Assembly (NCBI GenBank): GCA_003427395.1
Contig: BFEA01000002.1
Coordinates: 5,613,483-5,677,482, forward strand
From: Chara braunii
Lineage: Eukaryota; Plantae; Charophyceae
DNA length: 64,000 nucleotides
Direction: 5' to 3'
In this document: positions 6,284 to 54,522 of the stretch, piece after piece
Position numbering within the stretch: position 1 is the first letter of the stretch
Layout: every line of letters begins with the position of its first letter
The notes under the pieces: generated by a model
What the model was told of the DNA's origin: nothing
Databases searched by the model: none
What the model saw: the letters and a program-made list of their open reading frames with translations, nothing else
Program-made: the position numbers and the translations under genes

Positions 6284-8957
6284 CGTCGACAAGTCTCTTC
6301 TACTACCCAGACTCATTAATTCATTCTATGAGATCTTTTTCTGTTTTTCTTTTTCTTTTTATTTAGCAGTGAATCGTATGATGAGATATTTATCATCTCT
6401 TAGGTCCTAGTATCAACGGCTCCCCACCTTTCCTTCTCTTTCCGCATGTTTCCTGTCTGTTGTTCTCTTATTTCTTCTTCTCCGCCTTTCTCCTCCCTCC
6501 CCTCTCCTCCTCCCTTTGGTCCCTCACATGCCGCCCACTTTTCTCCGCTTGTTGCTCTGTGTGGTCTTCCCGCCTCGTCTTTTCCTCCTCTCCTCCCTCC
6601 CCTCCCCCCCCCCCCCCCCCCCTTTCTCTCTCTCTCCTCGCTGTCTCATTCACAACTGTACTGTAGTTGCCGATCTATGNNNNNNNNNNNNNNNNNNNNN
6701 NNNNNNNNNNNNNNNNNNNNNNNNNNNNNNNNNNNNNNNNNNNNNNNNNNNNNNNNTCTTTCCATCTTGCTCTGCCCATCTCTGGAGCTCCCCCCCCCCC
6801 CCCCTTTCTCTCTCTCTCCTCGCTGTCTATTCTTCTCCTCTCCTCTTTTCAAATCCTGTCTCTGGCTCTTCGTTTTCTATGCCACCCTACTCCTGCAGGC
6901 ACCCTACCTTGTTTACCCTGTTGTCTCTCTGTATCTAGTCTATATCTGGGACAGATTACTATACTCGTTTTACTTGTCTGGAGTCGGCGTCTCGTCACTT
7001 GCAACGTGTATCTGCAGCCTCATTGCTGGCTGTCATCTCTCTTCCTGACGGCATGGCCACGTGTCATGTTGTCGCCCTTCTCTCTCTCTCCCCCCTTTCA
7101 CTCCGCGACTCCGCATGTTGTCGCTGTTCTCTCTCTCTCTCTTCCCCCCCATCACTCGACTCCGCATGCTGTCTTGTCGCTCCTCTCTCTCTCTCTTCGT
7201 CACTAGTTGACCTCTCTATAACGGACCTCTCTAGAACGTCACCTGCGCACGTTGATGCAAGGGACCTCTCTCCCTTTCTCTCTCACGTCTCTCCCCTCAG
7301 CCTCACGTCTGGTTGGCATTCTGTCTTCAGCGTCTTGTCCGCTTGTTTTATATACAGCCCGCTTCTCTCTTTTTTTTTTTTTTTTTGGGACAATCATTCA
7401 ATCTTTTCCCTAAATTTTGTATCCCCGGTCGGCCGCCCCGACAACTGACCGTCACCATATATGTCCTCCTACTCGCAGCACCGTCCGTACTGTACGATTT
7501 CCTGCTTCTCATCTGTTCAGCTTGGCTCTAACGTTCTTTGCCTCATGCCTCATGTCTTCGCCTAATACCCTAAACTCATTTCTCTCTCGTTTGTCCCTTT
7601 CTGATCAATCTTCCCTTTTTCTCTTCACTTTTTTTTCTCTTCCCTTTTTTACTCTTCCCTTCTTTTTTCTTCCCTTTTTCTCTTCCTTTCTCTTCCTTTT
7701 TCTCTTCCTTTTTCTCTTCCCCTTGTCATCTGTTTCCGGTTGTTGTCCCATCCTTTCTCCTCCTTTTGCTCTGTCATCCCTTCGCTCTCTTTCTGCCCCC
7801 CTTGTCGCTTCTTTCTTTCCCTCTTGTTCGTTGTCGTCCCTTTGTCCTCTCCTGCTACTTTCTCTTTTTCTCCCCGCTTCCTCTCTTTTGTCGTCTCCTG
7901 CTCCTTTCTCTTTGTCTCCCCCCTTTTGTCCTCTTTTTCTCCCCCCTTTGTCCTCTCTTTTGTCCTCTCGTGCTCCTTTCTCTTTTTCTCCCCCCTTGTC
8001 CTCTCTTTCTCTCCCTCTTGTCCATTGCCTTCCCTTGGTTCTCTCTTCCCCCGGTTTCTCTCAGCACTTCGCCCTATCTTGTTCCTCCTCCTCCCTCAGT
8101 CTCCTTTTTCCTCTCTTTCTCCTCTTTCTCCTCTCTTTCTCACTCGCCCGTTTCTCGCACATTCTCTCGTCTCTATGCCTCTCCCCATTCGGATATCGCT
8201 TTATTTGTCTTCTCTCTCTCCCTTGGATCTCATCCTGTTTTCTTCTCGTTAGCTATGGCTATCTTTTTCTTTTTTTCCCCTACAATCTTTACCCGAGTAT
8301 AACGCCCCCTCATTATGGTTTGCATTTAGACTGAAAGTTGCCCCAAATACAGCTATGATGACCGAGCGTTTTATTTGGGTGTTAGACTGTATGCACGTGT
8401 AGATATAGCATGTGGGTAGGTCTTTTCTTTGCCACGTCAGGCTCACACCTCTTTTTTTTTTTTTTTTTTGAATTAGCGAGAATATTGAAAACAGTGGCCA
8501 TAGACCATAGACTGCTTCTCGTACAAGCATTGATATCTAGGTCATCATCATCATTACTTCTCCTCATGTACTGTTCTCAGCAAGAAACGCGCGCGCATCA
8601 TCCCCGACGGAAGTGTATCGGCCAGGCTGCGCTCCCGGCCTTCCTCAGGGGGCTTTACTGCGTGCCGCATCTTTCTCGTTTCCAATCCTGTGCGAAGTGA
8701 ATCTTACCCATCTCTCCCTTTGTATACCATATCCAGACCACTTGTCCTGTTTCCATCCGCACCACGTGTCGTCATTTTATTTATTCATCACCTTTTATTG
8801 ATTATTTTTGTTTTTTGTTTTTGCATGGCCTTCAGAAATCATCATTGATCTGACCGTCCCCAGGGCAATTCTGGATCATCCTTTTTTTTTTCTTTCATAT
8901 ATATATTAAAATTTGGACCATTTCTCGATTTATGCGTGTCATCCTTGCGCAGGGGCC

Positions 8958-8989
<32 letters not shown>

Positions 8990-11900
8990 ACGGATGTCCC
9001 GAAGGACAATTATTCTCTTCATCTTAGGGTATCTGGATTGGAATCTTTGAGTCTGTATTTCAACGGTTCACGGGTGTACCAATTGAGCTAGGCCGGTTGG
9101 TTTCTTTCTTCTTCTTCTTCTTCTTCTCCTTTTTCATTTTTCATTTTTGAATCGGATGTACTAGGTAGTGCAGATTCATGGTCGGAGCCATCTGTTTTTT
9201 TTTCTGTCAATTTTTTTTTTCAACCGTCGATTACTGATCAGTTTGTGAACCTGCTCTCTACTTCTGTCGCAGTTGTAGCACTTCTCAGTGCACTCCCTCT
9301 TCTTCTCGATGTCAGCTTCTCCCAATCTGCTTCTACTTGGCTACGTCTCTTATGTCGCCTTCCATCTTGCCTACCCTTGTCACTTACCTGTCTTCCACCT
9401 ATTCTCATTATCCTCCGACAATGCCCCGACGTCTTGCATCTCTACCATCACTTACCTGTCTTCCACCTGCTCTTACTATCCTCCCATATCCCCTTTTCCA
9501 TTGCTCAAAGCCCTTCAAAGCCCTACTCCGTTGTCTCGTTCCACCTTTGTTCCCCTCCTACGTGTTGTACTTTCCTATCCTGATGATTCGCGGCCACTTT
9601 TGTGTGTCTGCTGTCTCTATGCGCGTATTACCTTTCTCCTCTCTCCATCTCCTCTCCTTGTCCTATTATGTATTGCTGACTCGGGCGGTACCTTTGGTTC
9701 CACAATGCCTCTCGGAGAACCAAACGGTGTAGCCGAGCCGACGCTCGGCTCCCGCAGCAAAAGAGAGAGAGAGGTCCTGCTGACATGGTGCAAATGGAGG
9801 TGATGGGAACGCGGTAGTCGAAACGCTGTAGCCGAGCCGACGCTCGGCTCCCGCAGCAAGAGAGAGAGAGCGAGCGATTTTTTTTTTTTTTTTTTTTTTT
9901 GAAGGCATGGGGGTGTAGATAGAGAGAGAGAGGTCCTGCTGACATGGTGCAATTGGAGGTGATGGGAACGCGGTAGCCGAGTGCGGAGGGGTTTGGGGAC
10001 TCGCTCCAGTACTCCACATACGACTGGTATCGGGACTGCTATGTGGACCGCATACAAGAAGACGGATCGAACATTTTGATTGTACTTGGTCCCTTTACCA
10101 GCTCCAAATTCATGTAGAATGGTGTGCAGTGCAGCCAGGCCTTCTGGGTTAGCGAGACTTGGGTGCATATTGCCGACTTGGGCGATAACTTCGATTCTAT
10201 AACGCCCTCTGGAGAAGGAGAGATTCTATAGCCCAGGCTTTAGGCTTTAGGCTTTTGGCTATCGCGTCCCTCCCCCTTCTCCTGACTAACCTGAGGTTAT
10301 TTCCGTAATCGGTATTGGTGTCATTCAAGAGCGCCAGCTACCCGACTTCCCACGAACTTAACGCACCCTGATAATGAATGCATCAAAGCTATATTTCCGG
10401 TCAGATACAGGCGGAATAAGGGTGCGTTGTGTTCGGGGGGAGACGGTAGTAGATCTCACTGTGAGTGGAAAGATAGCCTTCATTTGGACTTCTTCGACTT
10501 CAGGATGGAGGGGGAAAAAAACCTACCGACAAAATTGAATTAACGGGCTCAGTAGAATTAAATCAAGCACGATAACCGATGCACGTTTTTTTTTTGTATT
10601 TTTTTTTTGACGATTTCTTCATTTATGGGAATGGTCCAAAAAGGGTGGTGNNNNNNNNNNNNNNNNNNNNNNNNNNNNNNNNNNNNNNNNNNNNNNNNNN
10701 NNNNNNNNNNNTTTTTTTTGAACCGTTTCTTCATTTATGCGTGCCATCCTTGCGCAGGGGCCATGATCCTCAAATTCTTTGTATCGTTCCAATGATAACG
10801 GATGTCCGTTATCGGTTATCAAGGACCTTTGTAAATTTTTTTTGGTCCTTTTTTTTGGGTCCTTTTCTTCATTTTTGCACAGGACTTTTTATTTCGGAGA
10901 CAAGTGTGAAATGAAGAAAAGGACAAAAAAAAACGAAACAAATGCACTGCAAAAATGCGGTCCAGTGTGCGGGAAAAAATCGAATGAGGCATATTGGAAG
11001 AAGAATGAGAGGATGACCATTCGTTCTTGCAATGAGACAATCGTTGTTGTTTATCGCTTTGATCAGTTTTTTTTTTTTTTTTTTGAATTAGGTTTTGATG
11101 TTATTGCTCAATAATAATATTTAATAATTTAGGGTTTGCAAGGCAATCAAGGATTGGCGTCTTTGTCTCCTCACTTCTCTCCTACCCTCTTCTGTCCTAC
11201 CCTACTCTGCTATCCTCATCTCCTACGCTCGAATCTCGTTCTTTCTTCTCTCCCACCTTCTCCTCTTCTACCGTCTTTTTTTAAATCCCACTCTTCGTCC
11301 ACCCCCTCCTTCCCTGACCTCTACTACTGTCCCTACCCTCTCTCTCTCCTCTTCTCCACATCTTCTGTTCTATCAAAAAATTGAACCCCGCCTGTCTTCT
11401 CTCGGCACTTGCCTTCTTCTCCCTTCATGTCTTTTCTCCCCTCCCATAATGTTCTCTGCTTCCCATCGTTATCTCGTCCTTTCCATCTTCTCTTTCATTC
11501 ATCGGGCTTCTGTTCTCCCATCTCCTCGTTCTCTCTCCTCTCTCGCGTTCTGCTCTCATCTTTTCTTGTCTCCCGCCTTGTCTCGAACACTCTGTCTGCT
11601 TTCCCATCCCATCCTCCACATATCTTTTCTCCTTATCCATTCCTTGTTTTCTGATACCCTCTCTCTCTCCTTTCTCTTTGTCTCTTCTATCCTCTTCATT
11701 CTTATGCCTCACGCTCTAATGTTTGCGTTTTCTTCTTTCCCTGTCTTTGTTGCTTTCTCCTCTCTCTCTCTTTCTTCTCTTCTCTCTCTCTCTCTTATCT
11801 CTTCTATGCTGTTGTTTCTACTCTCCTGTTGTCGTTTCGCAGAGGCATTGGCATCTGTTGTGTCGGAATGCAAGCCGGGAGTGCGTGTCGTGGATCTGTG

Positions 11901-14900: not shown

Positions 14901-17900
14901 TTCCTTTTTAATGACCGAGTTTCTATTATTTTGTGTTCCACTGTTTTGAGAAGTTGATGAAGAAGGTGCAGAATGCTTTAAGGAGGGTGAAGGGGAAAAA
15001 AAAGAAGAATGCTTTTGGTTGATGTGCTTGCTGCACGCTAGTCTCGGGCATCATATACGAACAAAAGAGAAAGGAAGAGAAAGTGGAAAGGCTTTTCGGT
15101 ATAGTTTTATTAACGTTTTGGTTATGTTTTTTAGAATCTATGTCCTCTAAAACCTTACCTCTTTTTGTCTATATCCAATAATTTCTCGTTGACCACGACT
15201 TGTTGGAACAAGGCTCTCCACCGCTTTTCATCCTGTGTGCATTGGTTCAAAAATTAGGGTTTGAATGGATCTATGGGGGTTTAAAATTAAGGCTTTGTGC
15301 ACCCAAGAACTGTTGAAATGCAGACCCAAGTTGAAATCCGTAGTTTTAGGTTAGGGTTTTGATAGATCTATGGTGGTTTAAAATTAGGGCTTCGTAGCTC
15401 AGTTAGTACACCGAAGAACTGTTGAAATATAGACCCGAGTTCAAATCCGTATGATGATGGGATCAGATGAACGATATATATCCTCCTGATTGATGAGTCG
15501 GTGAAACTCCGCCGAAACAGTTTCTGTCACAGCCGCTCGTTTGTTGTCTCCTCTTCTCCACTTCTCCCTCTCTTCCTACGTACGGTTTCCCGGCCAGATC
15601 TGTTTGACGATACATACATCACAGCCCCTCGTTCGTTGTCCTCTTCTCCCTCCCCTCCCTCTCTGCCTACGGTTTACCGTAGGCAGCTCTATTTGTCGAT
15701 ATATTCTGGGCTACCTACCAGCTGGTCCACTCGGGTCTCCTTGTTTGACTGCGGTGGCCGGGCCGTGCAAGTACCAGTGAAGGGCCCAGCCAAAAATTCT
15801 GAAAAAAAAACTACGTAATGGACAAAAAGTACTCTGAACAGCTTTTGCCTCACGGTCACATCGAAATTCTTTACCGAATTTGTTTATTCTTTTTTGGCCC
15901 TGCTGGGCCACTTGCCCTGGCCACTCTGGTAGCCTATATTTGTGCAATCAGACTTGCTATCTTTCACACTTCACATGTATGCAAACAGGTGGGCAGCAAA
16001 CTGGCGACAAGCGCCCACTCAAACTCAGAGATATGGTAGCCGAGAACACAGTTCAGATACAAGTTCACTTCAATGGCTATGGCGACACATCGCCCACACA
16101 ACCCTCTGTTCGCACACACAGGATCACCCTGGATATCCCACACAGGATACTCTGTACACACATACACACACACACTCGCAACACTCTACCTACAGCTATG
16201 GTGGCTATGGCGGCTGCTACCCTATCGCTATGGCTAAGCTCCTTCTCGCCCACTTCGTCCTCGGGCTCACTGCAGACCACCTCGCACAAGTCGCTGTGGC
16301 AGAGCTTCCGCATGGCTCACGCAGGAATGAATGAATGGCTGGGCGCTGCCCTCTGATTTATACTTCTGTAGTTCGTTGGTCTGGCCCTTTCCCATGCCCG
16401 TAGTGCACACAGTCCCATGCGGTACTTGCTTGACTGGACTAGGGCTGACTGGGAGTGGGACTGCTGACTCAGCACGTGTAGACTCTACCACTTGCCCACT
16501 TGCCTCAGCCTAAACGTGGGCAACTTCGAAAGGCCACTGCTAGGGCCTTCCGGAAAGCCGTGGACTTGGCCTTTCGATACTGTAGCAGCTACGACCTTAA
16601 CCCTTCACTAGGACTCCTACCCGACAGGTCTACGGATCGAACCTCTACTACCTACGGACCCTACGACAGCCTACCAACTGTTACGAATACACAGGTCACG
16701 GGTTCAACTCTAGGGCTCGGCACAGATACTGTACACAGGTAAGGTGAGGACTAGGGATCGAGCCCTGGGATCTGCATCGGCTACTGCGAACAGGTGATTA
16801 CCGTTTCATTTGTACTGTTTGACAGTATATTAAATGGTTTGAATCAATCTATTGCTTTTTTTTTTTTTATCCTCATTTTGTGAGCTTTTCTGCTTTGTTG
16901 CTTGCAGCCAGTGCGCTACTGTCTTCACGAAGTCGAAGAAGAAGGTGGAGAAGGGAGTGGCTTTCCCCACTTGTGTATCTGTCAACAATTGCGTTTGCCA
17001 TTTCTCTCCGCCAGCAACTGACCAGACGGTGCTATCGGCGAACGACATTGTAAAGATGTAAGATTCAACTGCCCATCTTTTTCTTTCGTCCTTGCTTTTT
17101 GTTGTTGTTGTTGTTGTTGTTGCTTGCCCTTTCTTTCTTTGTCTTTAGATCCCATTCCAAATTTTCTGTGTCTGCTTTATTATCTCTTTCGAAGGGTAAG
17201 TAATGAATGGCATTTGTTTGAGTGGCGGGTTGATGATACGACGTGCAAAGGTTGGAATCCTTTTTACTTCAGGCCAGGGGGAATGCTCGACCTTCTGAGC
17301 CACGTGGGCCGTTTGTCTCGATGGGATTGTAATGGTATTTGTTTGTGTGGCAAGCAGATGGATGACGATAGTTTGTTGCTATAGCATTGCTATTGCTATA
17401 TGATATTTATGTCTGCTCATGTGGTATGCATGATCTTTTGTTTGTATTTTCTGGCTCAGGATGGGTCTTTGATGCATAACCCCTGGTATTGATTGGTTAT
17501 AGATTTTAGCGTGTCTGTGAGTCGATGCGATGTTCCCTGCAGATGCCATTCTCTCCTTGCTGTGTTATTACCCTGAGCGTAATGTCGTTTTATCATGGCT
17601 GTATTTGGCCAGGATGGCGACTGTATACATGTTCATGATGAGGGAAGTTTTTATCATGGCTGTTATTGGTCACAATGGCGACTGTATACATGTTCATGAT
17701 GAGAGTTTTGTTTGGGGTGGGGGAATAAGGTATATGGTATATGGTCANATCATGGCTGTTATTGGTCACAATGGCGACTGTATACATGTTCATGATGAGA
17801 GTTTTGTTTGGGGTGGGGGAATAAGGTATATGGTATATGGTCAGAGATGTCTCTGTGCTGTGCCGTCCGTTGTCGTAATTATGCTTAGATTGGTGTTCCT

Positions 17901-20900
17901 GGTCGTGGCTTGTGTGCGAGTTCGTCGTTTTCTCATGGCTGTATTTGACCAGGATGGTGTCTGTATACGTTCATAATGAGACGGAGTTTTTTTGGGTGAG
18001 GAATAAGGTCGTATGCCGTCAAAGAATGTTGCTTTGCTGTGCCATGTGTTGTCGTAATTATGCTTATGCTTAGATTGCTGTTTTGTTGTGGCGGCTTGTG
18101 TGTGCGTTCCCTTCTCTCTGTTGTTCGTTCAATACAGTGATCTCGGATGTCACATCGACGGTTTTATCGCGGTGGTTGCACATACTGTTGTCCTCCAAGA
18201 GCCAGGCACGCCAGTGGCTGGAAAAGCAGCAGATGTCATGCAAGCTGCTCAGACTGCTTCTGAGGTTGCTATCCGTCTCGTGCGGCCGGGGAAGAAGGTG
18301 TGTATGCAAACGTGTTTGTGCTTCGACGATATTCGAGTCGTATTCTATTTTGTTGGGACTTTCGTTTTTTTGAATTTGGACCGTTTCTCGATTAATGTGT
18401 GTCATCCTTGCGCAGGGGCCATGCTAATCTTCATTCTGTGTATTTCCAGTTTTAACGGATGTCCTGAAGGACAGAACTTTGGGTATTCTAGTGGGCCAGT
18501 GGTGTTGTAATTGTATTCTATTCTGTTGAAACTCTGTGTATTCTAGTGGGCCCAGCTCCACGGGCTCTCTCTGACCGGTCAGGTGCCCAACTGGGTGCAA
18601 AGTCCAGAGCTCGTCGAGGCAATCCCGGGAAGTCCAGCACGGAATCTTAAGAATGCGAGGATTCAAAAACGTCGGGGAAAACAAAATCATTTTGAATGCG
18701 AACTTTTTTGTCGAAAAGTCGCTCTGACAATCTCTAGTACAGTCAATCGACAAGATCCCTAGCGCATTCAAACGAGAAGATGAGTAATATATCAAGTAAA
18801 GTAAAAAATAGAAGATGCACCCCTGTAGCACCTGTATACCCCTGTTAAATCCTGGATTTTTTTAACCTTGTTACCGTCCAACTGCATTTAACGAAACAAA
18901 TAATTAATAATATTGAATAAAATAAGGGGAGATGCACCCCCATTGCCGTTGGTTGTGTGTTTGAGTCTTGTATGCGGATTACACACAGGCCTGGCTCCCC
19001 ACTGTGTTTTTTCTCGGGGTGCGAAATCCGCGATGGGGAAAAAAAGCTCAGAGGTTCTGGTGGTTGTTTAGTGTTCGAAGTGGGTCAAGGGGGGGTAATT
19101 CAATATGGAAGTAAGGGTCCGTCTTCGTGTCTGGTTTGTCGTCTTATACAGGAGTCTACAATGCTTCTTCTGGATGTTGTGCTGGTGGAGGAGTTTGACA
19201 ACGTTGATTTGAAACATCTGCAGTGGAACCTGGACAGGATTTTGTACTGTGGTGCAAAGATATTTTGCTGCTTTCCTGATATGATGTTATTGGAAGCGAG
19301 CAGCAAACTGCGAATCGTTTTCCTGGCATCGCTTAATTGGATGGGTAGGGAAGTCAAGTTTTGATTGGCTAGGGTATATGTTTGACGACGGCTTTCCCAT
19401 GTCAGGTGTGCTATGGTTTCTATTTGCATTCATTCAATGTTGCATTCATTCGAAGAATGCGATGCGGTGACAAGCTCAAGAGGAGGATGATGAAACGCAC
19501 TGGGCACCGACTCTCCGTGAGAGAGATGCTTGATAGGGCCTAGAAAACCCAATCCTGACTCCTCTCTCCCTTTCCCCCGCTTCGCTTTTCCCTTTTTCCC
19601 CATCCTGCGGACCGGGGCCGAACGGACTGATTGCCTTGTATGGTTGTGATCGGACCCGAAGGTGAACCGGTTATTGGGCCGGAGTTTAAGTGGCTGGATG
19701 TCACACGTGTGTAACTTCTAGTATACAGATCGGGAGTTCAAGCCGTAACAGGATCAGGTGGATACAATAATGGTAAAGGATGGGAGGAGGGATAGGAGGG
19801 TATGCCATCATCCATCTTGCGAACGGGGGCTGAAGGGACTGCCTTGAAAGATTGCAATTGGACTCGAGGGGAAGCTGCGTATATAAAACCAGTCAGCCCA
19901 TGTTGTCTGATAACGTTGACGTTTTGGCGTATTGAATGTGCTAATCTGTCCCACGTTTGCTAGAATTTTAACCGTTGGAAAGGAGGAAGAAGGATGAAAC
20001 GCACTGGGCACTGATTAATCCTTTGTGATCGAGATGCAAAAAGGGACTTGAAAACCCATGGCCGACTTCCCTTTTATTAGGTGACCAGATTTCTTGGCTT
20101 TGTTGCTGTACTGGATTTGCTAATCTGTCCCACGTTCGCTAGATTTTTTAACCGTTGTAAACGAGGGAGAAGGATGAAACGCACTGGGCACTGATTAATC
20201 CTTCGTGATTGAGAGGCGAAAAGGGCCTAGAAAACCCATTGCTGACCTCCCTTTTATTAGGTGACCAGATTTCTTGGCTTTGTTACTGTATTGGATTTGC
20301 TAATCATCTCCATGGTCGCTATAGATCTTTAACTGTTGTATACGAGGAAGGAGGATGAAACGCACTGGGCACTGACTAAACCCTTTGTGATCGAGACGCA
20401 AAAAGGGCGTAGAAAACCCATTGCTGACTTCCCTTTTCATGCATTTGAAACATTGTATTGGAGATAGACTTCACTTCGGAGAGGATGCCTTGTTGTTCTT
20501 GAAAGACAAAGAACCTGTCCAAAACCAGATTCCAAGACGAATAGCCCCAGCGAATGTGCATTTCTGAGGGCTCTTTTTCCGGGTCGAAACGGAGGGGTGA
20601 AAATGGACTTCGCAGTGTCGGCAACAAGTCCGGCATATTATAATGGACACACTGACTGATTCATGGTAAAAGGGAGTTAAACACTGGAGAGGAATGTGTT
20701 TTCGCACTCTCTTTTCGACATAGAGAAAAAAGGAAACAAAGTGTGATAGGGAGTTGTCATATTGCACTGGGCACTTGAAGGGGGAAGAAGGATGAAACGC
20801 ACTGGGCACTGATCTCTGTGATCGAGACGCGAAACGGGCCTAGAAAACCCATTTCTGACTTCTTATTCTCACATGTCATGAAAGAATTGAAGCAAGGTAG

Positions 20901-23900
20901 GTAGGTTGAAGTTCGGGATAACGCCGGGGCATTGACTTTGTGTTGTGGGCTAGAGCCTGTCGATCGTAGGGGAAGAAGGATGAAACGCACTGGGCACTGA
21001 TCTTTGTGATTGAGAGGCAAAACGGGCCTAGAAAACCCATTTCTGACTTCTCTTTCTCACATGTCATGAAAGGATTGAAGGAAGGTAGGCAAGTTGAAGG
21101 TAGGGCCTTTGACTTTGTGTTGTGGGTGAGAGTGGCTTCGATTGGAACCTGTCGATTGTAGGGGAAGAAGGATGAAACGCACTGGGCACTGATCTCTGTG
21201 ATTGAGACGCAAAACGGGCCTAGAAAACCCATTTCTGACTTCTCATTCTCACATCTCAGAAAAGGATTGGAGGAAGGTAGGTAGGTTGAAGTTTGGGATA
21301 AGGCCGGGGCATTGCCTTTGTGTTGTGGCTGAGAGCGACTTTGAGTGGAACCTGTCGGTCATAGGGGAAGAAGGATGAAACGCACTGGGCACTGATCTCT
21401 GTGATCGAGACGTAAAACGGGCCTAGAAAATCCATTTCTGACTTCTCATTCTCACATGTCAGAAAATGATTGGAGGAAGGTAGGACGGTTGAAGTTCGGG
21501 ATAAGGCCGGGGCATTGACTTCGTGTTGTGGGTGAGAGCCTGTTGATCATAGGGGAAGAAGGATGAAACGCACTGGGCACTGATCTCTGTGATCGAGAGG
21601 CAAAACGGGCCTAGAAAACCCATTTCTGACTTCTCATTCTCACATGTCAGAAAATGATTGGAGGAAGGTAGGTAGTTTGACGTTCGGGATAAGGCCGGGG
21701 CATTGACTTTGTGTTGTGGGTGAGAGCCTGTCGATCGTAGTGGAAGAAGGATGAAACGCACTGGGCACTGATCTCTGTGATCGAGACGCAAAACGGGCCT
21801 AGAAAACCCATTTCTGACTTCTCCCTCTGGCTACAAAGGGATTGGACGGAATTTCTTTCACCAAGGTAGGATGGGCTGCGGATTCTCGATGAGAGACGGA
21901 TCGCTGTGATCGAGAGGCAAATCCGGCCTGGGAAACCCATTTGTGACTCGCTCTGGCCACAAAAAGGATTGCACGGAACTGCTTTGACCATCTCTTCCAG
22001 ATGGAGAAAGCGGGAAAGGACGTTGGCTGATTGAAGGGGGAGCAGGATGAAACGCACTGGGCACTGATCTCCTCTGTGATCGAGAGGCAAATCGGGTCTA
22101 GAAAACCCATTTCTGACTTCTCCTTCCGTCTTGTTATTAAGCTGTCGAATGAATGGAATTCAATTTGTCGAGGGATGCAGACTGAAAAAGAAAAAGTAAA
22201 AGAGAAAGTAAAGAAAGGGATGCAGACTGGAGTTGGAGCTAAAGGGGAAGACCACTTTTGTTCTATGCTGCGGTCAAGGAAGGGATGAATGAGTCTAGAG
22301 AGTTTTCTCGTCAGAATCGTATCTCCTTTTCAAATGACATTGGAAAGTAAGACATAGTATGGTACAGTACTACACATGATATTTTTGAGGAACAGGGACG
22401 TTTTGCATAGTAATAATTATGTGGAAACGTAGGCGTCAGGCGTAAGTATGTTTCCACTTTCTTTTGTTGACTGTAGGGGGAGGATGATGAAACACGCTGG
22501 GCTCTGATCTCTGTGATAGAGAGGCGAACTGGGCCTAGGAAACCCATTTCTGACTCCTCCTTTTGAGGTGTTTGGAGTTGTATATTTTTAGTTCAACGTA
22601 GGTGAACTGGAGTTTGTCGTGAAGGGCAGAACACCCACTGTATGCTTTGGATGAGGGGCTGAATGAGTTGCATCTCCTTATTTCTGTCGTATGTGATTTT
22701 CAAATGAAGTTGGAAAATAAGCTGCGGTGTCCTTCGGGACATCCGCTGAAATTGGAACGATACAGAGAAGATTAGCATGGCACCTGCGCAAGTATTGACA
22801 CGACTAACTCGAGAAATGGTCCAAACGTTTTTAGGAAAATACGGTGCGGCATATGGTACATGGTCTTTCGTAAGGAACAGGTACATTTTTTTGTGTCATG
22901 TAATTACTGTCTTCTGCATCCGAGTAAAACGTATGGTCATTGTAGCGGTATTTGGTGTATCTTTCCGTGTAGATACAGCAGTAACGACCGTAGGTTGTAT
23001 TCGGGTGAAGAAGGGTAATTAGTAATTACTAATTAATTTATTAATGATTATTACCTTGGAATGCACAGTTTGTAGTCCTGTGGGCAGTCAGGTGGAAGTG
23101 CAATCAGAGCCAGAGCAAGTTTTTTTTTTTTTTTTTTTTTTTTTTGATGAATCGATTTGAGCACAGTGGAGGGTAGTTACTTTTGGGCCTCCGTCCACTG
23201 TGTAATGCTCTTCATGCATTTGGATGCTTTCTGGATAGGATACATCAAGATGTCGGAATCGTCCGAATGCAGCTGGTCAAGAAATTTACCCAAATGCAAG
23301 TAGAATGCCGGGTAGTGCAGCGAGGCCGTTTATTTGAAGTTGGGGGGTGTGTTTGTCAGTAGGGATATGAAATCAGGGTACTGTCAGGCTGAAGTTGTGC
23401 AAGTTTGAAGTCTCCCATATGCATGTGTTTGTCTGAGCAGGTGTCAGGGATGGCGGGGTACGCAGTAAGCAGCTGTGGAAGGTGTTTTGGTGTTGGATTC
23501 CTGTGTTGGCTACACCATAAGTTATCTAGTGCTCTACCTCTTGGAATGAAGATCGCACATGCACATTAATCCACAGCTCCTCCAGAATGGCTGGTTATAC
23601 CCCAGAGAGAAGGATTGAGTTTGTGAGTGAAGTCATCCCTGTGTGTTTGGCAAATCTATGGATCATGTACCCATGTCAGAGATATCTTTTCCCAAGGACT
23701 GTTGCACACTAGAAGTAGAAGAGAGAAAAGACTTTGATCTGTACGAGTGCTTTGTTGTTGTTGTAGTCTCTCTCTCTCTCTCTCCCCTCTCTCTCTCTCT
23801 CTTACATCCAGTATGCTTGTTCTTCCCGTCGCGGATTTACTTTCTGCCTGCTCTCTCTCTCTCTTACATCCTGGGATGCTTGTTCTTCCTATTGCGGAGT

Positions 23901-32410: not shown

Positions 32411-34655
32411 GTGCTGATGATGGAAAAAAAAATGTTATTCGAAGGCAGCGCCTGCCGTTGCTCTTATGAGGCATTGAATATAATTGTCACTACCACTGAA
32501 GCACACACCAATGTCGATGCTCTGTAGCTCAGGCCATAGATGCTTGTGCAATCCTGCGTGTCAAATCCCTGGAAATGGGAGGGGACGTTCCAAGAGTAAA
32601 TAGGGTCCCGGCGATGGAAAAAAGCGGTGTCGATGGAAGGCATATGGGAGGCTCTGCTGGCTGGTGTGGATGTTTTCAGAGTGGATTGGGTGCTGATGAT
32701 GATAAATAAATGTTATTTGAAGGCGGCGTCTGTCGCTGCTCTTATGAAGCATTTAATATAATTGTCACTACCACTGAAGCACACCAGTGTCGATGCTCTG
32801 TAGCTCAGGACGTAGATGCTTGTCCGATCTTGCGTGTCAAAAAAATCCATGGAAATGGGAGGGTGCATTCCAAGAGCGAATAGGGTGCCGGTGATGGAAA
32901 AAAAGCGGTGTTGATCGAAGGCAACATCAGTGGTAGAATATAATTGTCACTACCACTGAGGCGAATATAATTGTCACTAAACTTAGAATATAATTGTCAC
33001 TACCACTGAGGCACGCACACCAGTGTCGATGCTCTGTAGCTCTTTCAGGTTTGCTGTCCGTCTTGAAGAATTTAGTTTGGCCAAATTGGTAGGATGTTGG
33101 CTGCTAATGATGGAAAACTACTACAAAAGATGAAGGTGACATGCGTTGTTGCGCTTGTGAAATTCTTCAAGTAATTGTCACTACCTCTGAGGCAAGCTGA
33201 ATGTGGATGGTCTGGAGTCGGGAGCAGGGGGGGTGCGTTGCGTTAAGTAAACCACATAGATGGGCAGCTTACCGCGCTTAGCGACTGGGAGAACTTAGTT
33301 TGGCCAAATTGAGAGGATGGTGGCTGCTGATGATGGAAAAAGACTGCAAAATCTGAACGCGACATCCATTGTTGCGCTTGTGAAATTTCTTAGAGTAATT
33401 GTCACTACCGCTGAGGCATGCCGATGTGGATGACGTGGAGTCAGAGGCAGGGGGGTGTGCATTCCTGTACGGAAAAAGCATGTAGATGGGCCGCTGACGG
33501 CTTTTGGTGAGTCTGGCAGGTCCAGTTAGTGTTTCCCTTCCATTTTTCGTGCGATAAGGTAAATTTTGGTGCCACGCTTCGAAAAGTACTTCGCTTGGAT
33601 CGAGAACAAATTTCATCTCGTTTGACAGATATCAGCCGTTGGCTGCCGATGATGGAGAACCTGAAAACACTGAAGGCAACGTTTGGAGTTGTTGCTCTTG
33701 TGAGAACTCTCAACACAATTGTCACTACCACTGAGGCATGCTAACGCAGAGGCTGTGGATCTCTCTTCTTGGGTAAGAGGCTTTTTCTTTTTTTTCTTTT
33801 TCTTGGGGGGGAGGGGGGGTGAGAGACGCAAATTTGTTCTGAAAACATTGTAGTTGTTCTTCGAGAGGAGTGAAGTGGGTGCTAATGAGAGAAAACATGC
33901 AAATAATGAAAGGCGACATCTACCGTCTTCACCCGAATAAAATGCCCGGTCATTATGGCTGCATCTAGACTGAAAGTTGTGCCAAATACAGCTAGAATGA
34001 CTGGGCGTTCTATTTGGGTGAAGACGGTAGTTCCCAGTTGCGAAACTTCTACACAAGTGTCACTACGGCTGAGTCATCGCAGCCTGCTCCCTGGCCACAA
34101 ATGTAGTGAGGCATCCAATTTTGCTCTGGTTGGTTGGACTTTTATGGTGTCCATCTCTCTATTGGGCAATTGGATGCGTTTTTCTTTGGCCAACAGTATG
34201 GCACTCCGCTTTCTGGAATGATCATTTGGGTGGCTCTTTTTTTTTCTCTTCTTTTTTTGCGCCAATCGGATGCTTATGATGGAAAAATCGCAAAATAACG
34301 AAAGGCAACATTTGCCTATCTGTGTGTGAACCTCGAGATCATATTGTCACTACCGCTGAGGCATCCGATACTCTGATTCCAGGGCATGAATGTTATGAAT
34401 CAGGGCGTGAATGTTATGAAAGAGTCTGTTCTACTGCATTGATTAGGTGTTAAGGCTATCCTCCTCACTTTTAGAGAGCCAAGAGGGGTTTATCTCGTAT
34501 TTGACTGGACTTGAACCTGATACCTTTCTTTACACTCGACGACCTCGAGTCGGTTATTGGGTGCTAATGATGGAAAACCTAGCAATAACGAAAGGCAACA
34601 TGTGCTTTTGTCGCATGTGTGGAATTTGAAATTATTGTCACTACCACTGAAGTAC
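32411..34655 (+). ncRNA. Tandem array of about 9 box C/D snoRNAs guiding the SSU rRNA A in GGU[A]GUGACAAU (human Am512/SNORD70-equivalent site)
   Basis: Units at about 32411-32504, 32690-32783, 32885-33014 (partial with duplicated end), 33101-33195, 33324-33419, 33643-33738, 33879-34075 (MITE-disrupted), 34271-34363 and 34561-34655. Each has a TGCT/AGCA-type stem, box C ATGATG(G/A), guide ATTGTCACTACC, N and box D CTGA. Confidence 0.88.
33921..34029. mobile_element. MITE family 1 inserted in a snoRNA unit
   Basis: TA-CCGTCTTCACCCGAA...TTTGGGTGAAGACGG-TA between box C and the guide of the unit. Confidence 0.85.
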
Positions 34656-41190: not shown

Positions 41191-41274
41191 TGTCGGTTGA
41201 CATTTACTTTTATTGGTCAAAATGCTCTGTGTTCTGTACATTCTCCTTTTTCGTTTTCTTTTTATTTGAATCAA

Positions 41275-41477
41275 TTCTTGATTATGGGTGTCATCCTTGG
41301 GCAGGGGCCATGCTATTTTTTTTTTTTCAGTATTGTTATTATCGCATGAATTTTAACTTGAGAAATAGAAGCAAATAGTTTCTTAATAATTTATACAGAA
41401 TCTTTGACTATTCTTCTTCTTAATATATTTTTTCTATAAAGAAAGAGAAATTAAGTAAAATGTAAATCCCGAAGGAC
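41275..41477 (-). pseudogene. U6: U6 pseudogene split by an AT-rich insertion
   Basis: GTGTCATCCTTGGGCAGGGGCCATGCTA (41288-41315) and the 5' end TCCCGAAGGAC (41467-41477). Confidence 0.7.
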
Positions 41478-53351: not shown

Positions 53352-54522
53352 CTAGTAAGAGAGAACCCAAGCCATAAGTGCTGTGATGAGAGCCATCAAA
53401 ATTGCATCGAGCGTCGAATGCGAAATGTGAAAGGGAAGGTAAAGTGTGCACAAGGCATGCAACAATCTACAATTGCAGAGGAGAGGATGCTGCATCGACT
53501 CAGCTGAGCTGCGGGCATAGTCGCCAAACCCCAACCCTCCGCCTCCTCCAGCCAAGTCCCCTCCTTTATCACTTCCCTGCTCTCCATTTCCTCCCTCCCC
53601 GCCTTGCCATCCTTCCCCTCCTTCTCCCCAATAAGCTTCTCCTCCCTCCCCTCCACCTCCGCCTCCGGCTTCCCCTCCTCCGTCCCCTCCTCCGTCCCCT
53701 CCTCCTTCCTCTCCTCCTTCGCCTCCTCCTCCCCAATACCCTTGTCGTGCCTCCCCTCCACCTCCCTCCTCCCCTCCTCCATCACCTCCTTTTCCTCCTT
53801 TCTCTCCTGGACCTCCTCCCCCCTCTTGTCCTCCTCCCTGTCCTCCACCTCGCTTTCCTCCTCCTCCTTCCTCCCCTTCTCCCCCTCCTCCATCCCCTCC
53901 CCCTACTCCTGCACCTGCGCCAGGGGCTGGCCCGTCTCTCTGACTTCCTCCAGGGGCGCCACCGCCCTGGCCTCCTCCTGGAGGCACCCTCGCACCTGTC
54001 GCACCTCCCCCTCCGTCATATCTGCGCCCTGAGCTCCTCAGATCTCCCTGGTCAGGCCACCCGTCTGCCATGTTTATGCATGAAGGAGGCTGGACACTGC
54101 TGCTGCCACCGAACGCCTGCAGGCAAAAGAAATATGGCGGCGCGCCAATGGAGCTCTCTAAGTTTACGTTTCTGAGCTGTATGCTTCTGCACGGCTCTGC
54201 TCGACTACAAGCTAACCTCCCCATCCGTCCATCAAGTGCCGACCCTGTCCCTCTCACACCGTCAAAGACAATGTTGGTGATCTCCACACCGCGGCTTCCT
54301 TGCTTGCATCGACGACCATTGCAATGATAGAACGCGTCGATGACCAGAGGCATGTGGACATTAATCATTTTAAGATTCCTAAACACAACATTATCGACCG
54401 ATCCTTGTCCGTTGGGCCAGGCCTTGATTCGTGCCCCGTTTGCCGACCCTTCGTATGTAATGTCGCTTATCTGTACGTCATGGATATATGCTATAGTTCC
54501 TCCTTCTCCCAAGCCGCCAATG
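53352..54522 (-). CDS. Polygalacturonase (GH28), last coding exon, with a Gly/Glu-rich extension and hydrophobic C-terminus; upstream exons not identified in the window
   Basis: Acceptor TACAG|C ATT GGC GGC TTG GGA completes (GHGI)SIGGLG; NGARIKAW is the RIKT motif; PLVIDAFYHC, GVEITNIVF, LACSRAEPCRSIQLRNVNL and QPPSC match the plant PG C-terminus. Confidence 0.9.

Follow-up and report, generated by a model that had tools for sequence, protein, structure and literature searches.

The box C/D small nucleolar RNAs (snoRNAs) snR76 of yeast (RF01209), SNORD88 of humans (RF00604) and snoR118 of Arabidopsis belong to Rfam clan CL00071. The methylation site of yeast snR76 in large subunit (LSU) rRNA is Cm2197 (PMC3116282). 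Arabidopsis snoR118, whose site is 25S Cm2187, has a single copy, located in the mixed snoR161/snoR66/snoR118 cluster (PMC2875012). SNORD115 and SNORD116, by comparison, are orphan guides that lie in repeated introns of long non-coding RNAs (lncRNAs) at imprinted loci and reach up to hundreds of copies (PMC11028025). Here, a 64,000-nt stretch of Chara braunii contig BFEA01000002.1 was analysed (i.e. the window, whose positions are used throughout), in which a single intron of EBP1 holds 12 units that resemble the CL00071 members in D' guide, predicted target, extra-pairing block and size. No snoRNA study of C. braunii was found in a literature search. The evidence favours, with some reserve, a working and redundant snoR118-type (i.e. 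yeast snR76, human SNORD88) guide cluster in this one intron.

Anatomy, family and predicted target of the array

The host gene was identified by profile searches made one exon at a time, in which all four exons tested matched NCBIfam TIGR00495 (i.e. EBP1). As exons 1 and 2 were placed at about 5549 and 11843 and the exons flanking the array were matched, the intron containing the array is intron 4; long introns and a GC content of about 46% characterize the window. The array comprises 12 complete units of 77–83 nt and two fragments, all on the + strand (i.e. in sense) between 19479 and 22560, in sequence without any N. Its organization is layered and is not that of a uniform tandem repeat: copies 2–4 recur with a period of 180 nt and copies 5–10 with one of 188–203 nt, and copies 1, 11 and 12 are isolated, with unrelated spacers. 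All 12 bodies are distinct (pairwise identity 69–97%), and the combined pattern of guide and second block has no further occurrence within the 64-kb window. An ordinary satellite was rejected as an explanation, since the spacer families are unrelated whereas the bodies retain boxes and guide.

Each of the 12 units has the GAUGA core of box C and a terminal stem of 5–10 bp closing boxes C and D. Box C is a perfect RUGAUGA in copies 1 and 12 and reads AGGAUGA in copies 2–11. Boxes D and D' are each CUGA in 11 of 12 copies, the exceptions (CCGA in both cases) being copy 2 for box D and copy 1 for box D'. The C'-like box (i.e. GUGAU-N-GA) contains one inserted base, and C' boxes of this type have been described (PMC3116282). 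Guide, D', extra pairing and box D are all retained in copies 3–11, and the guide of copy 12 has three changes. A sequence-only reading of this DNA had proposed 12 copies and two fragments of an 80-nt unit, in sense in EBP1 intron 4. The unit coordinates, the GT-AG intron and the TIGR00495 exons bear out the count, orientation and host, and the general anatomy of boxes and guide stands; corrections to it concern the AGGAUGA box of copies 2–11, the defects in copies 1, 2 and 12 and the mixed spacer periods.

All 12 units matched clan CL00071 in Rfam searches run in E-value mode, with E-values of 4e-8 to 6e-4 and scores that are all below gathering; at the gathering threshold, the window yields U6 copies only. 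Eleven units matched best to snR76 (33–46 bits, E 4e-8 to 1e-4) and one to SNORD88, and none attained the 55 bits that RF01209 (snR76) requires for gathering. Scores of 37–53 bits, likewise below gathering, were obtained for six single-copy homologues of other eukaryotes, a sign that the units score low because they are distant from the model. The snR76 consensus is matched in two places, the D' guide and a block ahead of box D. Judged from these similarities, the units are assigned at the clan or orthologue level (CL00071) and not to the strict RF01209 family, in keeping with the snR76/SNORD88 affiliation suggested in the sequence-only reading.

The D' guide is predicted to form a duplex of 10 bp with LSU rRNA in 11 copies (-20.9 kcal/mol) and of 8 bp in copy 12, as computed on an LSU fragment of another eukaryote (L001). 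Under the D'+5 rule, the fifth base before D' (G) lies opposite the third C of UGCCCAGUGC, the nucleotide already singled out in that reading, and the predicted target of the guide is the equivalent of yeast Cm2197 and Arabidopsis 25S Cm2187. The second block, GGGCCUAGAAAA, is predicted to pair with an overlapping LSU stretch just upstream of the guide target, at -6.9 kcal/mol in copy 2 and about -10 to -11 kcal/mol in the remaining 11. In yeast, mutation of the snR76 extra pairing reduces guided methylation (PMC3116282), and we infer that the second block of the array is this extra-pairing element.

In a working guide cluster, EBP1 transcription would supply the intron, and internal cuts, needed because many units occupy one intron, would separate the units before trimming to about 80 nt. 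The units would then be loaded with Snu13, Nop56, Nop58 and fibrillarin, and the D' guide, through its 10 bp on LSU rRNA, would direct 2'-O-methylation of the C equivalent to yeast C2197, with the second block contributing the overlapping extra pairing known for snR76.

Divergence of bodies and spacers, and the variant box C

Divergence was compared between bodies and spacers for the five complete units of the central block. The 79 columns of the body contain 6 changes, whereas the 98 spacer columns contain 28 as well as two indels (approximate binomial p 9e-4), with mean pairwise distances of 3.5% and 12.4%, respectively. The least variable 79-column stretch of the central unit coincides exactly with the snoRNA body, and permutation, with the best window allowed anywhere, gave p 0.011 for body conservation. 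Pairing in the terminal stem amounts to 91%, a level reached in 0 of 500 shuffles of these related copies, and three of its six pairs are compensated. Conserved spacer structure was looked for in the array and none was found. The lower divergence of the bodies and the compensated stem agree with the selection that had been suspected for them.

These differences bear on whether the array consists of one or two working genes and a satellite-like run of pseudogenes that are similar through recent duplication or gene conversion only. The fragments and damaged copies, the richness of the genome in repeats and RNA-derived copies and the failure to see mature RNA in reads (from unsuited libraries) all fit such a run. 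Duplication or conversion should, however, homogenize both parts of the repeat, yet the spacers are 3.5 times more divergent and contain both indels, the least variable columns are those of the body, and the weakest guides are found in the copies with a canonical box C; we consider a pseudogene run quite unlikely. As neither duplication nor conversion by itself would protect the bodies, several of the AGGAUGA copies are probably functional. Purifying selection probably acts copy by copy, with about nine copies kept intact.

Several points weigh against a working cluster. The target pairing rests on the LSU of another eukaryote, and ten copies (i.e. 2–11) have a G at the protruding position of the kink-turn (k-turn). 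In the left block, the difference between bodies and spacers was in the same direction and borderline (p 0.055), and all p values are approximate as the copies share ancestry. Neither piled-up ends nor a discrete mature RNA were seen in the reads, from libraries unsuited to RNAs of ~80 nt.

With respect to the k-turn, changes at the position held in the Snu13 pocket weaken binding and are harmful (PMC1874613). The AGGAUGA box need not mean dead copies, because L030, an intergenic snoRNA cluster of plant-like type, has a homologue in single copy with the same box, and because, among 24 distinct 5' ends of homologues, only 4 have a perfect box C. The L030 cluster (720-1400, - strand) has a TATA box, telobox repeats and a snoR118-type unit in first place, followed by C/D-like units.

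A second single-family C/D-like array is located about 3 kb beyond the EBP1 stop (32411-34655, + strand), with seven full units and three partial ones. Its box C starts are near-canonical, its snoR17-like D guide is complementary to the small subunit (SSU) rRNA stretch GGUAGUGACAA and its Rfam matches are weak. Because a second single-family array occurs in the same window, local snoRNA amplification looks like a trait of this genome. The copy number in intron 4 would, in a working cluster, probably be loose and near-neutral, reflecting a tendency of snoRNAs throughout this genome to be duplicated in place.

Alternatively, AGGAUGA could lower the strength or lifetime of each ribonucleoprotein, with a ten-fold amplification then selected to restore guide supply, making copy number adaptive. 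Consistent with such dosage compensation, the amplified form is the variant box C alone, both canonical-box copies carry a damaged D' or guide, k-turn position 3 affects Snu13 binding (PMC1874613) and the bodies are conserved copy by copy. However, the homologue in L030 has the same AGGAUGA box in single copy, the 4 of 24 perfect boxes indicate that the family tolerates variation without amplification, and the second array (32.4–34.7 kb) is amplified too, despite its near-canonical box C starts; dosage compensation is therefore judged unlikely. A wider proposal, that much of the rRNA-modification guide set of this alga consists of long single-family arrays with selected copy number, here offsetting a weak k-turn, is doubtful. 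If it were true, unequal crossing-over would make strains differ in guide dosage and hence in how strongly one conserved LSU site is methylated, a natural experiment on whether the number of snoRNA copies tunes rRNA modification.

Reads were examined over 19400-22700, a stretch of intron 4 that lies between its two U6 copies. No run was indexed as RNA for this stretch. A poly(A) run provided 6 reads (i.e. three read pairs), all sense-directed assuming the usual stranded library. Read contigs covered bodies and spacers to a similar, flat and low depth; the raised depth of a 74-nt contig on copy 10 was disregarded, since collapsed repeats would produce it. The sparse reads fit a sense precursor mRNA and are uninformative on mature 80-nt RNAs. 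The similar depth over spacers and bodies could also indicate an intron that escapes cutting between units and gives rise to long snoRNA-ended RNAs (i.e. sno-lncRNA-like), or that influences EBP1 splicing in cis, methylation then being secondary; a mammalian intron with two snoRNAs can yield sno-lncRNAs (PMC11028025). Flat low depth is, however, also expected of precursor mRNA or DNA, polycistronic snoRNA precursors are routinely processed in plants, the spacers are unconserved, and the guide and extra block belong to a canonical rRNA guide, so that this explanation appears very improbable.

The end copies 1 and 12 have the canonical box C in common and group weakly, and copies 2–4 form a supported clade, a pattern which fits expansion from inside via unequal crossing-over. 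Array growth probably involved at least two waves of local unequal crossing-over, with the oldest copies left at the ends. In one run (X1), a contig placed on copy 3 joins a body of copy-2 type to the copy-3 spacer; of the 10 sites that distinguish the two copies, 9 have the copy-2 base, and the stretch between copies 2 and 3 is almost without coverage. This suggests an allele shorter by one unit, or conversion, and a low-depth assembly effect is also possible; a copy-2/copy-3 junction would be as expected of unequal exchange. The indication of an allele with one unit fewer, together with gaps in the window and an unremoved Nextera mate-pair junction adapter (28736-28773, within the last EBP1 intron), raises the question of whether an assembly artefact inflates the copy number. 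This is extremely improbable, as 12 of 12 bodies differ, the array lacks N, and unique spacers and junctions are found again in independent runs (95–100% identity).

Coordinates and other features of the window

Features of the snoRNA array, its host intron and land-plant counterparts (window positions unless a locus is named; unit starts are approximate)
Feature	Position	Strand	Evidence
EBP1 exon 4	18138..18297	+	TIGR00495 E 8.7e-20; splice sites
EBP1 intron 4, GT-AG, 5,943 nt, array host	18298..24240	+	land-plant EBP1 genes have an intron at this position
Copy 1: box C canonical, D' reads CCGA, the most divergent of all	19479..19562	+	Rfam snR76 39.7 bits
Copy 2: AGGAUGA as box C and CCGA as box D, extra-pairing block weakened; likely decaying	19983..20069	+	snR76 34.1 bits
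Copy 3: intact guide, D', extra block, D	20163..20249	+	snR76 45.9 bits
Copy 4: intact	20344..20431	+	snR76 41.1 bits
Fragment: guide alone, without boxes	20764..20775	+	
Copy 5: intact; opens block of 188-203-nt period	20784..20862	+	snR76 36.5 bits
Copy 6: intact	20972..21050	+	snR76 42.9 bits
Copy 7: intact	21164..21242	+	snR76 40.1 bits
Copy 8: intact	21367..21445	+	snR76 36.2 bits
Copy 9: intact	21555..21633	+	snR76 38.7 bits
Copy 10: intact, terminal stem weak	21743..21821	+	snR76 37.4 bits
Fragment: decayed 3' half, C' to D	about 21896..21950	+	
Copy 11: intact, terminal stem strongest of array	22036..22120	+	snR76 33.3 bits
Copy 12: canonical box C, guide cut to 8 bp including one G-U pair	22476..22560	+	Rfam SNORD88 30.4 bits
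EBP1 exon 5	24241..24456	+	TIGR00495 E 6.5e-30; 79-83% identity to best plant EBP1 pieces
Land-plant EBP1 intron 4 snoRNAs	L059:4503-4598; L068:2788-3869; L061; L065; L067		

Six U6 copies above Rfam gathering are present in the window (8907-9007, 10712-10826, 18370-18477, 22729-22830, 28864-28966 and 41260-41363), most of them altered in conserved parts. Two of these lie in intron 4 in opposite orientation, bracketing the snoRNA array, with a predicted duplex of -140 kcal/mol. A role of this inverted pair as a processing stem was set aside, as U6 copies occur about every 10 kb and the arrangement could have arisen by chance despite this energy.

EBP1 intron 3 contains a duplicated element of ~150 nt (17584-18070) with internal repeats of 61 and 96 nt that folds into hairpins; no Rfam match was obtained and no canonical H box was seen for this element. 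A dispersed repeat of ~110 nt, possibly a piece of a short interspersed element (SINE) or miniature inverted-repeat transposable element (MITE), occurs at 22905-23015, with at least seven further copies in the window at 70–82% identity (28129, 33923, 34850, 35409, 35655, 51745 and 51974). By eye, the N-terminal half of an open reading frame at 53352-54512 (- strand) resembles the end of a polygalacturonase (GH28) and is followed by a Gly-rich tail.

Comparison with described snoRNA clusters

Land-plant EBP1 loci were examined for snoRNAs. An snR76-type unit was absent from 10 of 10 of these loci, and intron 4 in seven of the ten contains 1–3 copies of a snoR144-like H/ACA RNA; the Coptis intron 4 additionally holds snoR69Y, above gathering. 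A snoR144-like unit was searched for in the window and not found. Host, intron and local duplication (to 2–3 copies in land plants) are shared with the Chara array, whereas the passenger differs, and EBP1 intron 4 appears from these comparisons to be a snoRNA host common to Chara and land plants, which strengthens the proposal that EBP1 is a plausible snoRNA host. The EBP1 locus of a close relative was not found in searches against plant EBP1 pieces (best exon-5 identity 83%).

Among 56 metagenome loci with an snR76/SNORD88-type snoRNA, a limited survey in which many loci are short and redundant, none has a tandem arrangement, and one has two copies that are 9 kb apart in an inverted duplication. 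Arabidopsis snoR79a-c and snoR100a-c are like the array in that a single intron of a protein-coding gene hosts several homologous snoRNAs in sense, with 2–3 copies in the homologous intronic clusters examined as compared to 12 in Chara. Introns with several homologous snoRNAs are also known in Drosophila. Multi-isoform intronic snoRNA clusters are common in plants and Chlamydomonas. The array is unusually large, but the sequence-only reading overstated its uniqueness in view of the Arabidopsis clusters of 2–3 copies, the multi-isoform clusters of Chlamydomonas and the second array in the window.

Local amplification of C/D snoRNAs, with copies gained, lost and converted, is common to the array and the eutherian SNORD115/116 and SNORD113/114 loci, and C/D snoRNAs are in general prone to local duplication (PMC11028025). 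The likeness to SNORD115/116 drawn in that reading goes no further, as the SNORD115/116 guides are orphans located in repeated introns of lncRNAs, whereas the Chara units have the features of a canonical LSU guide and occupy one intron of a protein-coding housekeeping gene. For the plant lineage, the array adds an example in which C/D snoRNAs were amplified locally on a large scale with the canonical rRNA target retained, and its divergence pattern suggests that many redundant copies can remain under selection. Such arrays permit tests of many-unit intron processing and of guide dosage. When set against the described systems, both the molecule and the arrangement are of known kinds, and the scale is what is new.

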